NCBI GenBank assembly: GCA_000388065.2
Contig: KB932212.1
Length of the DNA: 15,796 nucleotides
Reading direction: 5' to 3' (one strand)
From: Fonticula alba ATCC 38817
Taxonomy: Eukaryota; Protista; Nucleariida
In this document: piece by piece, positions 4,727 to 8,809 of the stretch
Position numbering within the stretch: position 1 is the first letter of the stretch
How the letters are laid out: the number at the start of each line of letters is the position of its first letter
Notes under the pieces: model-generated
What the model was told of the DNA's origin: nothing
Seen by the model: the letters and a program-made list of their open reading frames with translations, nothing else
The model's database searches: none
Made by a program: the position numbers and the translations under genes

Positions 4727-5035
4727 GAGGGGCCCCCCCCCCCCCGCGACCACGCACCGATTGACGGGGGTGGCCCGGGGGGGGGGGGCGCCCCCCCCCC
4801 CCCCCCCCCCCCAAAAGGGGGCCCGGGGGCCCCCCCCCCCCCCCCCCCCCCGCCACGCCAGCCCATCCTAATCAAGGAGCCCGCAGGGCTGCGAGCGGTC
4901 ACCGTCCTCCGGTCGTAGGCCAGGCGCTGTTCCTCTCCAGGAGAGCGTTTGACCGGCGCCAGCGGCCCACAAGCACGCATGGACACCCACATATGCGTGC
5001 TTGCACATAGGGGGATCCCGCCCAGCTGAGGAGTG

Positions 5036-5098: not shown

Positions 5099-5952
5099 CT
5101 ATTCCAGCTCCAGCTGCGGCCAAGTGCACACCGCCCGGCCGCGGTGCTCGTCGAAGGCCGCGTCCAGTCGGGACTCCAAGTGGGAGATCCGCTCGGCCAG
5201 CGGCAAGTCCCCTCCACCGGGGGGAGGGGCAGCATCCCCGGCGAGGGGTCCGACATCTGCGGACTCGAGCCACGCCCGCCGCCGGCCGTGCCGGGCCTCG
5301 GCCAACTGCCGGACATGCTGCTGCTGCTGGCGCTCGGCACGGCGCGCCTCGGTCGCCGCGGACCGGGCCTTCTTAGCGCTCTCTGCTCGCATGCGCACGC
5401 ACGCACGCACGCACGCGCGCACGCGTACACGCCAGCCAGGCAAGTGACGATCGGCGAGAAAGCCCCCACCGCCGCCCCGCAAAGGACGAGAACGCACCAG
5501 CGTGCAAGGTCAGCAACACGCAGCACGGCGCAAACATCAGCAGAGGCAGCTCACGTACTGGAAAGGCGGTTGGCTTCGGATCGCTGGAGGAATGCCACTG
5601 CCGAGGGAGTCAGCTCAATGGCAAAGGACCCATCCTCGTCGGATGCCCCCTCGTCCGGCGCGTTCCCGACGGACAGGTCTCCCGATGGCCAAGCCGGCTT
5701 GGGGGACGTCGTGGCCACACTCGATGGACGGCCGGCCGGCGGCGAGGACGCGCCCGTCCCGCGCGACACTTGCGCATCTGGGTAGGCTACCCCATGCCAG
5801 GATCGCGCGTTCGACACGGCCACCCCGTGTGGAGCCCACACAGCTGGCGCATGTGCCCACTGCGGTGCACCCGTGCCCCCTCGCTGCCAGGGGAGGCACC
5901 GCTGCCCCTGTGGTCGGCGGTGGAAGTTGGCCAAGAAAAAAACGTGGCTCAT
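5099..5952 (-). CDS. GEMIN8: Gemin8-like SMN-complex subunit (exons 5952?-5559 and 5382-5099, about 225 aa; start codon uncertain)
   Basis: A phase-1 intron at 5558-5383 (GTACGT...GCAG) joins DEDGSFAIELTPSAVAFLQRSEANRLS to KSAKKARS...HVRQLAEARHG...LAERISHLESRLDAAFDEHRGRAVCTWPQLELE*. This follows the Gemin8 pattern as I recall it from the human protein: acidic patch + MEITEELRQYFAETERHR...EMKRLYG...[34 protein letters not shown]. The first ~15 codons could instead be an intron 3' end (CTGAC, T-run, CACAG). Confidence 0.75.
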
Positions 5953-6459: not shown

Positions 6460-6774
6460 TCCGGGTCCCTTGAAAGCTCAGGTCAATCGGACACACAGAT
6501 CTTGCTTTGGCCCGGACACCGGGGTGTGCGCACCCGCCAGGACCGATGCCTCGGTCGGCCAGGCAGGGCCTCGGTCCTCTCGCGCCCCGGGAGACACGAA
6601 GGGCGCGATCTCGGCGGGCTTTCTTTTCAGCCGCCCCGGGTGCCCAGCCCCCGGCCTCCGTCATCCTCCTTCCTTCCCCTCCCTCCCTCCCTCCTCGGCC
6701 CATGCCGGTCACTCGTCACCTTTGCCCGCCTGGTTTGCCAAAGCCCGCTTGATCCCTCTCTCTCTCTCTCTCCC

Positions 6775-6775
<1 letters not shown>

Positions 6776-6831
<56 letters not shown>

Positions 6832-6853
6832 NNNNNNNNNNNNNNNNNNNNNN

Positions 6854-6895
<42 letters not shown>
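6776..6895. repeat. Poly-C homopolymer (56 C + 22 N + 42 C)
   Basis: Direct count; internal gap 6832-6853, so the true length is unknown. Confidence 0.95.
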
Positions 6896-6944
6896 ATTCG
6901 CCGAGTAAGCCTCCCCTCTTCGCCGTCACTTAACTCTCAGCGTC

Positions 6945-7688
6945 ATGGGCGCCGCCGCCTCCCGACGCTCGGCCAAGGCCCTTGACTTGGAGGATCTCAT
7001 CCAGAGCCCCGAATGGGCCGGTGCGCGATAGCATGACTGTGCTTGCCTTTCTTCCCCCTTCCTCTTCTTCCTCTCCTTTCTCACCACCTCCTGCTTGCGC
7101 CCCCCAGTGCGCATGGCCTCCGACACGCACCAGCGCACCACCCCCGACCGGCCAACCACGCAGCCCTTCCTCGGAGAGCCACTGCGCCCGGGGTGGCCAC
7201 GCAACGCCGGGCACAGCCTCTTCCCGGCGCAGCCGCACCTGTTGCTGCCGGGCCCGGCCTTCTTGCGCCCGGTACAGGGGTCCTTCGCGCTGAACCTGGC
7301 CGATGACATCGAGGGCACCCCGTACCACTATTACTTGGGATCCTTCCTGCCGGGCGGGGCGCACTGGGCCAGTGTCCGGTACAGCGTCGGCTGGCAGCGA
7401 CACAGCCTGGCCCTGGGGACGCATGCCCTGGCCGGGCAGCTGCGTCTGCAAGACGACCGGGCGGTCTTTTCCTTTGGCGACGTGGTCCGCCGGCCGTTGA
7501 CCCTGGAGTGCTGGGCCACGACCGACATGCGCCCGGCGCTGGACCTCCTGGCCCACCTGGGCGCCGTGGGCCTGGACCGGTATCCGGGCTGGCGCCAGGG
7601 AACCGAGGGGGCCGTGTCGCGCTTTGTGGTCCCCTGCGAGGCGGGCATCAGCCTGACCTTGTCGACCGTCGGCGACGGGGCCAGCCCC

Positions 7689-7727
<39 letters not shown>

Positions 7728-8585
7728 AGTGGGACCGGCTCCGGCGGCCGGCGATCGGCCAACGCGGCCGGGCACCCTGCCGGAGCCGCGACCATCACCG
7801 TGCCCACCCTGGCCCAGCTCCGGGCCGCGTGGGACCGCATGGCCTCCACCACCCGGGTGGCCCTCTACACGGGCCAGCGCCTGGAGCCGATCAAGCGCAA
7901 GCGTCGGGTCGAGCCCCTGCGCCTGTCGCTGACTTTGTCACACGCCATCCACCCCTCGGAGGCGGTGACCCTCCTCGGGCAGGTGACCCTCGGGGGGCGC
8001 TTTGCCTCGCCCTACCATGTGCAGGCGGCCGACCCGGATCCGGCGGCCCTGGGCGGCGGGCCGCGCCTGGTCCGGGTGGCCACCGGCTACGAGCCCAATG
8101 GCGCATATGACATTCCCCCGCGCACGGCCGTCACCCTGGTCGGGGCCCTCGGGTGCCGGGTGTTCCTGCTGCCCTGGCTGTCGCTCAGCATGGCGGCCGA
8201 CACGCGCGCCCACCGGAAGGCGGTGCTGTCGTGGCGCGACGCGCCGGCCGGCGGGTCGGCCCACCTGGTTCTCAGCTCGGTGCCCCTGGTGCAGGGCCAC
8301 TCGCGTTTGCTGGCCGGCAGCCTGACTTACGAGGTGGAGAAGACCCTGCCCCTGAGTGGGGCCCTGCGGAGTCTGGTGGGGGAGACATCGGTCCCGGTTC
8401 GGGCCCGTGTGCGTGTGGACTCCGACCAGCGCATTGGCATTGCCCTTGAGACGTCGCTCTCCACGGCCCGGCGTGGGCCCTTCAACTCCTCGGCCAGCCG
8501 CCTGGTGGCGGGCTTCCGGTATGTGTATGCCCGGCACACTGGCCAGTCGCGTCTTGGCGTGGCTCTGCATCTGGGCGATCGGTGA
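6945..8585 (+). CDS. Divergent mitochondrial outer-membrane beta-barrel of the eukaryotic porin superfamily (Tom40/Mdm10/VDAC-like), 517 aa; exons 6945-7020 and 7108-8585
   Basis: The gene structure is well supported: a phase-1 intron at 7021-7107 (GTGCGC...pyrimidine tract...CCAG) and 1554 nt in frame. The protein starts MGAAAS (MGxxxS). It has many short amphipathic strand-like segments. The motif RARVRVDSDQRIGIALETSL resembles, from memory, Tom40 KGSVDSNWIVGATLEKKL and fungal Mdm10 KARVDQNWxIGxLWEG. The C-terminus RLGVALHL-GDR* fits the beta-signal Po-Hy-G-Hy-x-Hy-x-Hy. Confidence 0.7.
7689..7727 (+). repeat. GGT(GGC)12 trinucleotide repeat encoding poly-Gly13 within the beta-barrel CDS
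   Basis: Direct count; in frame with ORF 7095..8585. Confidence 0.95.
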
Positions 8586-8809
8586 TGGTGCTCCGGTGCA
8601 GGAGGGGGGGGGGGGGCGGGCGGCGGGCCGCATGGTGAAGCGGGAGGGAAATACAGCAACACATGAGCACAAGGCCGAGGAGGGCCAGCGCACTGCCGGA
8701 GGGGATGGGCCGGGCGGGCGAGGCAAGGAAAAGGGGGGAGGGGGGGGGGGCGCGGGAGTATATTTCGCATGGGTACAGGGACAGCCCGGTGGGAGTTGCC
8801 GGCCCATGA

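Follow-up and report, generated by a model that had tools for sequence, protein, structure and literature searches.

Within a window of 15,796 nucleotides of nuclear DNA (the whole stretch analysed here), the Fonticula alba scaffold KB932212.1 carries a transcribed and spliced orphan gene whose 517-residue product opens with a Met-Gly motif suited to N-myristoylation and displays a marked strand-type periodicity over most of its length. We tentatively favour the view that this product is a membrane beta-barrel of the mitochondrial type. The gene spans positions 6945-8585 on the plus strand and consists of two exons (1554 nt when joined). Translation of the joined exons gives a protein with N-terminus MGAAASRRSAK and with SRLGVALHLGDR directly before the stop codon. 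The protein is basic (pI about 10.4, net charge +17), and six residue types (L, A, G, R, V and S) account for 61% of it.

The gene structure is supported by transcript evidence. A single 728-nt contig of run X2 (organism A, 2012) skips the intron at a GT..AG joint (7019->7107), whereas that joint is absent from DNA run X1, which comes from the same organism and retains the intron; X2 can thus be taken as cDNA-like, with the gene both expressed and spliced. Moreover, this contig follows the genome unspliced across 6900-7019, so that the AG at 6940 is no acceptor in it, and an upstream exon spliced into that AG, which the original prediction had raised as a threat to its own reading, is excluded in this transcript. 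Since that acceptor is unused in the contig and an in-frame TAA lies upstream at 6906-6908, the protein begins MGAAASR. The 5' limit of the cDNA contig at 6900 lies directly downstream of a poly-C tract of ~130 nt with an internal assembly gap (6766-6896), and the mRNA may extend further 5'. The coding part itself has a GC content of 0.72/0.58/0.89 at the three codon positions, and absolute-frame GC3 holds at 0.89-0.93 in 300-nt bins from 7201 to 8400 with an even periodicity.

Across the gene the DNA of the window is identical to the scaffold in assembly GCA_000388065.2, which already calls a 517-residue product on the identical 1641-nt span and records no Pfam family for it. As such, the exon that had been described as missed was already part of the public annotation, and the transcript evidence confirms that public gene model. 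The predicted two-exon gene of 517 codons with its MGAAAS start was exact in its coordinates by translation, X2 contig and NCBI call alike, and the C-terminal end, penultimate motif and Gly13 insert read from the letters are all present in the sequence. We found no mention in the open literature of H696_05683, the probable locus tag.

The surroundings of the gene are summarized together with its own features in Table 1. A convergent neighbouring ORF on the minus strand (8953-11661) is 100% identical to the NCBI hypothetical protein H696_05684 of Fonticula alba, and about 225 nt separate the range of that gene from the focal stop codon. Homopolymer runs of C or G recur between the genes (about 4730-4855, 8603-8616 and 8735-8750), and reads of unrelated RNA runs pile on the G-runs; the raw-read RNA runs labelled organism B show this piling only and do not cover the focal gene. 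DNA nearly identical to 6900-8700 was found in soil, sediment and sludge metagenomes and in DNA runs labelled organism B (44-58% of words); it seems that Fonticula, or something very closely related to it, is either widespread or a common contaminant.

Table 1. Features of the focal gene, its product and the neighbouring genes, in positions of the window.
Feature	Position	Strand	Basis and remarks
225-aa product, no Pfam family	5099-5952 (L001 16309-17162)	-	NCBI call
5' UTR, minimal, as seen in RNA	6900..6944	+	cDNA-type contig and sequence reading; in-frame TAA, no ATG
Exon 1, coding part, 25 codons + 1 nt, MGAAASRRSAKALDLEDLIQSPEWA	6945..7020	+	ATG at 6945; same start in the NCBI gene call
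N-myristoylation consensus M-G-A-A-A-S-R (Gly2, Ser6, no Pro7), then basic R7, R8, K11	6945..6965	+	regex match; lipidation predicted
Intron, 87 nt, GT..AG, 3' part pyrimidine-rich	7021..7107	+	skipped in X2 contig, retained in DNA run X1
Exon 2, coding part, TGA at 8583-8585	7108..8585	+	open frame; GC3 0.89; RNA contigs collinear 7107-7679 and 7740-8609
Pro-rich segment, residues 27-82, no strand-like pattern	7110..7277	+	sequence reading; residues 1-82 without period-2 signal
First strand-rich block, residues 83-213, ~8 amphipathic segments	7278..7670	+	hydrophobicity autocorrelation, pattern scan
Gly/Ser/Ala-rich insert, residues 214-250	7671..7781	+	source of all spurious database matches
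Gly13 run, residues 220-232	7689-7727	+	sequence
Second strand-rich block, residues 251-517, ~11-14 amphipathic segments	7782..8582	+	period-2 z=3.7; low-confidence AF2 hairpins
Motif RVRVDSDQRIGIALE	8406-8450	+	sequence
RLGVALHL, residues 507-514, 3 residues before the C-terminus	8550..8573	+	match to Po-x-G-x-x-Hy-x-Hy
3' UTR start	8586..8609	+	RNA contig ends at G-run, 8609
H696_05684, 1002 aa, with introns	8810-12260 (ORF 8950-11661)	-	UniRef name: Mediator of RNA polymerase II transcription subunit; no Pfam domain
135-aa product, PIG-Y domain (PF15159), GPI-anchor biosynthesis subunit	about 13682-14213 (L001 8048-8579)	+	NCBI call

With its start thus fixed by the transcript contig and the upstream in-frame stop, the N-terminus is a good candidate for lipid attachment. 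MGAAASR satisfies the full PROSITE-type myristoylation pattern, G-{EDRKHPFYW}-x(2)-[STAGCN]-{P}, in a regex test and has a small residue at position 3. The earlier claim of a Met-Gly start suited to N-myristoylation accordingly stands as far as sequence and transcript go, and the product may be myristoylated in the cell. D14, E16 and D17 are acidic, which speaks against a matrix presequence, and reading the N-terminus directly revealed neither a hydrophobic signal-peptide core nor an acid-free presequence. The precedent invoked for a lipidated barrel was also found in the literature: human SAMM50 and TOMM40 are both N-myristoylated, and SAMM50 needs the lipid to be targeted properly (PMC6235283).

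The body of the protein is typified by an alternation of hydrophobic and polar character. Over residues 83-517, the hydrophobicity autocorrelation is negative at lags 1, 3 and 5 and positive at lags 2, 4 and 6, and the combined alternation statistic reaches z=4.3 when compared with global shuffles and z=4.2 with 15-residue block shuffles, values attained by 0 of 2000 shuffles. We calibrated this measure on 92 annotated proteins of Escherichia coli K-12, drawn from three stretches of its chromosome. The focal protein, at z 4.0 for the full length and up to 4.5 without the linker regions (two trimmed forms were scored), lies above 92 of these 92 controls, at the top of which stand beta-rich proteins (ompT 2.8, cusB 2.5, fepA 2.5, elfA and elfC 2.25, lpxD 2.1); the outer-membrane barrels bamA and ompF score 1.4 and 0.4. 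A value above all controls indicates that the protein body is built of amphipathic strands that are unusually regular and of fair length. In a pattern scan, 21 amphipathic segments of 9-15 residues were marked, which is compatible with the 19 strands that, with an N-terminal helix, make up a VDAC/Tom40 barrel, and is not to be taken as a strand count. A hydrophobicity scan found no strong alpha-helical transmembrane segment in the protein; residues 367-385 (VTLVGALGCRVFLLPWLSL) are borderline hydrophobic (mean Kyte-Doolittle 1.75) and may form a hairpin, or else a helix. An internal duplication of the two strand-rich blocks was considered and rejected, as BLASTP between them returned nothing.

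By sequence comparison the protein stands alone. All sequence searches used the exon translations separately, the exons being joined only for translation and statistics. At E<=10, no Pfam family was matched by the complete exon 2, by four sub-pieces of it or by exon 1, the Porin_3 and MDM10 profiles to which the original prediction had looked included, and NCBIfam likewise returned no family. Among PDB sequences compared with the whole of exon 2, the best 60 of 157 matches (E<=10) all fall on the Gly-rich insert; the C-terminal 267 residues matched nothing at E<=10, and the N-terminal 189 residues gave chance-level matches to glycogenin-1 and a serotonin receptor (E about 1-2). Word searching with the complete exon 2 found nothing, the Gly run having probably filled its candidate list, and with residues 245-491 it found nothing at E<=10. 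Exhaustive phmmer against 1.84 billion protein representatives produced three matches, to unrelated proteins, at E about 7e-4 and all on the Gly/Ala-rich insert, and no relative outside that insert; a metagenome scan found no encoded relative. On the strength of these searches together, the protein is an orphan by sequence, with no detectable relative and no detectable paralogue in Fonticula. Neither protein search returned the focal product itself, which is present in the gene-position index, and the neighbour's product is in the word-search collection; the absent self match therefore says nothing about annotation. The glycogenin-1 (GT8) alignment consists of two collinear pieces at E about 1, one at 7185-7241 ('RPGWPRNAGHSLFPAQP' to 'DPGWPDCFNSGVFVYQP') and one at 7440-7592 ('FSFGD...ECWATTDMRPAL'). 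A relationship to GT8 was set aside as probably chance, the spacing being off by 60 residues and no Pfam family being matched.

For the beta-signal of mitochondrial barrels we used the pattern Po-x-G-x-x-Hy-x-Hy, drawn from the original prediction and the general literature, and the last marked segment of the protein matches it, as do ~10% of shuffled sequences within their last 30 residues. In known barrels this conserved signal is located in the C-terminal strand (PMC11452307). By language-model features, the nearest clusters are unnamed, and the nearest named ones are apicomplexan Porin_3, chloroplast OEP24 and OEP37; 8 of the 10 best named matches share family or clan with the top match. 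Their scores lie at 0.88-0.91, with low recognition and 156-169 features in common; the tool grades this as a lead only, and these neighbours may be driven by composition. AlphaFold2 run without an alignment gave a mean pLDDT of 33 for exon 2 and of 38 for the last 235 residues, with no barrel in either model and values >50 only in a few hairpins at about residues 431-474. Foldseek comparison of the last-235-residue model with the PDB, with this low-pLDDT input, returned noise (best E 0.2, axonemal proteins). These predictions weigh neither for nor against a barrel.

Period-2 amphipathicity fits a membrane barrel and soluble beta folds alike, and is therefore not decisive between them. Indeed, the same alternation would be expected of sheets with a buried core, as illustrated by the high rank of lpxD, elfA and cusB among the controls. 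The product might accordingly be a soluble or peripheral beta-rich protein (a sandwich, a propeller, a beta-helix, or two beta domains linked by glycine) held on the cytosolic membrane face by its myristate and R7/R8/K11, and we regard this as a genuine possibility, though not as the expected outcome. The Gly-rich insert does divide the protein into two blocks, and its predicted N-terminal lipid and neighbouring basic residues resemble the combination of myristate and basic N-terminus that is a classic peripheral membrane anchor. No barrel family was matched in Pfam, NCBIfam or the PDB halves, and soluble beta folds greatly outnumber mitochondrial barrels. Against such a fold, every named language-model neighbour is a membrane pore of an organelle, the alternation stays coherent to lag 6, suggesting long strands, the beta-signal-like last strand lies at the very C-terminus, and the two blocks show no mutual similarity.

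We think it improbable that the gene is young or fast-evolving, has no stable conserved fold and owes its strand pattern to a reduced, GC-driven amino-acid alphabet. Such an origin would agree with the want of any relative among 1.84 billion representatives, with the extreme composition and with the lack of anything confident from AlphaFold. However, the gene is expressed and correctly spliced, its codon-position signal is strong and even across 1.4 kb, and block shuffles that preserve local composition do not reproduce the periodicity; moreover, the alpha-type product of the Fonticula neighbour, under the same GC bias, has no period-2 signal (z=-1.1).

Returning to the barrel, we propose the following picture. 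The orphan gene, transcribed and spliced, encodes a basic 517-residue protein whose Met-Gly-Ala-Ala-Ala-Ser-Arg N-terminus is a good substrate motif for N-myristoyltransferase, with a Pro-rich linker next to it. The remaining ~430 residues would form some 20 long amphipathic beta-strands, with a single Gly-rich loop breaking the series, and the myristoylated basic N-terminus would aid membrane targeting, as has been reported of human SAMM50. Gene, splice, N-terminus, want of relatives and strand-type periodicity are shown; the barrel fold, a place in the mitochondrial outer membrane, dependence on SAM and lipidation are the putative parts. Should the protein be a barrel, it would be confined to its lineage or else have diverged past sequence detection. 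The fuller version, in which it is an extra N-myristoylated, lineage-restricted outer-membrane barrel unlike Porin_3, Mdm10 and Omp85, whether as a new family or as the last remnant of Mdm10 after an apparent loss of ERMES, appears doubtful to us as a whole.

Few families of mitochondrial outer-membrane barrels are known, namely VDAC, Tom40, Mdm10 and Sam50, along with a handful restricted to particular lineages. If the barrel reading is true, a further barrel in this near relative of the fungi would lengthen this short list, and would provide a second instance, this time from outside the animals, in which to study how barrel import accommodates an N-terminal lipid. If the protein were an Mdm10 without ERMES, it would represent a natural separation of the role of Mdm10 in SAM from its role in tethering. 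If it is merely a peripheral beta-rich orphan, it is an ordinary hypothetical protein.

Set against the established families, the focal protein is not recognisable by sequence as a member of Porin_3 (VDAC/Tom40), MDM10 or Omp85/Sam50. Mdm10 (PF12519), a barrel of the ERMES and SAM systems in fungi and certain protists, is the most divergent barrel known, and solved Mdm10 structures exist. We know of no N-terminal Gly2 lipidation among the features of Mdm10; the focal segment FSFGDVVRRPLTLECW may resemble a conserved stretch of the fungal protein. The likeness that had been claimed holds for size (517 residues, against 56 kDa for yeast Mdm10; PMC11452307), and extends to the long internal loop, the predicted strand-rich body and the beta-signal-like last strand. 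Mdm10 is reported, going by the title of Flinner et al. 2013, to co-occur with ERMES. It fails at the profile, with no Pfam family and hence no MDM10 at E<=10, and at the PDB, where the best 60 of 157 matches sit on the Gly insert and those of the halves are at chance level. In an EukProt survey, the cells for Mmm1, Mmm2, Mdm12 and Mdm10 are blank for Fonticula alba, Mmm1 is the only ERMES subunit listed for its relative Parvularia atlantis, and most subunits are listed for fungi, Capsaspora and ichthyosporeans (PMC10648710 Table S2B). These blank cells and the missing profile match weaken the Mdm10 reading, although divergence could hide all four subunits. A highly diverged Mdm10 orthologue, acting as ERMES anchor and working with SAM, is a special case of the barrel reading and in our judgement a very improbable one.

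Sam50/SAMM50 (Omp85, PF01103) is comparable in length and offers, in its human form, the lipid-dependent targeting described above (PMC6235283). The focal protein differs in having no Pfam match and no [IV]RG[FY] loop-6 motif; as no Pfam family at all was matched, there is no POTRA or Omp85 profile match either.

The Tom40/VDAC family (Porin_3, PF01459) shares with the focal protein the beta-signal-like C-terminus and a weak language-model neighbour. Human TOMM40 has a Pro-rich N-terminal extension, and the focal protein, too, has a Met-Gly start followed by a Pro-rich stretch. Unlike Tom40 and VDAC, however, it is about 150-230 residues longer and has no Porin_3 match at E<=10; no PDB phmmer match to a solved VDAC or Tom40 sequence lies off the Gly insert (among the best 60 of 157) or, for the halves, above chance. 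Exhaustive phmmer detected no similarity to any paralogue of Fonticula, and together with the missing Porin_3 match this argues against a recent Tom40 or VDAC copy, leaving the suggested second Tom40 or porin paralogue unsupported.

The remaining suggestion, an undescribed lineage-specific barrel, retains the period-2 amphipathicity, the beta-signal-like end and the weak language-model neighbours in its favour, and has against it the absence of a porin-family profile match, an outcome that the original prediction had itself named as refuting. In mitochondria, few barrels fall outside the Porin_3 and Omp85 superfamilies. Additional outer-membrane barrels confined to one lineage have a precedent in OM47, OEP24 and OEP37, of which OM47 is a lineage-specific mitochondrial barrel of plants (PMC5100019). 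These are plant proteins, and Fonticula has no plastid. OEP24 and OEP37 are among the named language-model clusters nearest to the focal protein, with scores below 0.9 that leave homology unproven.
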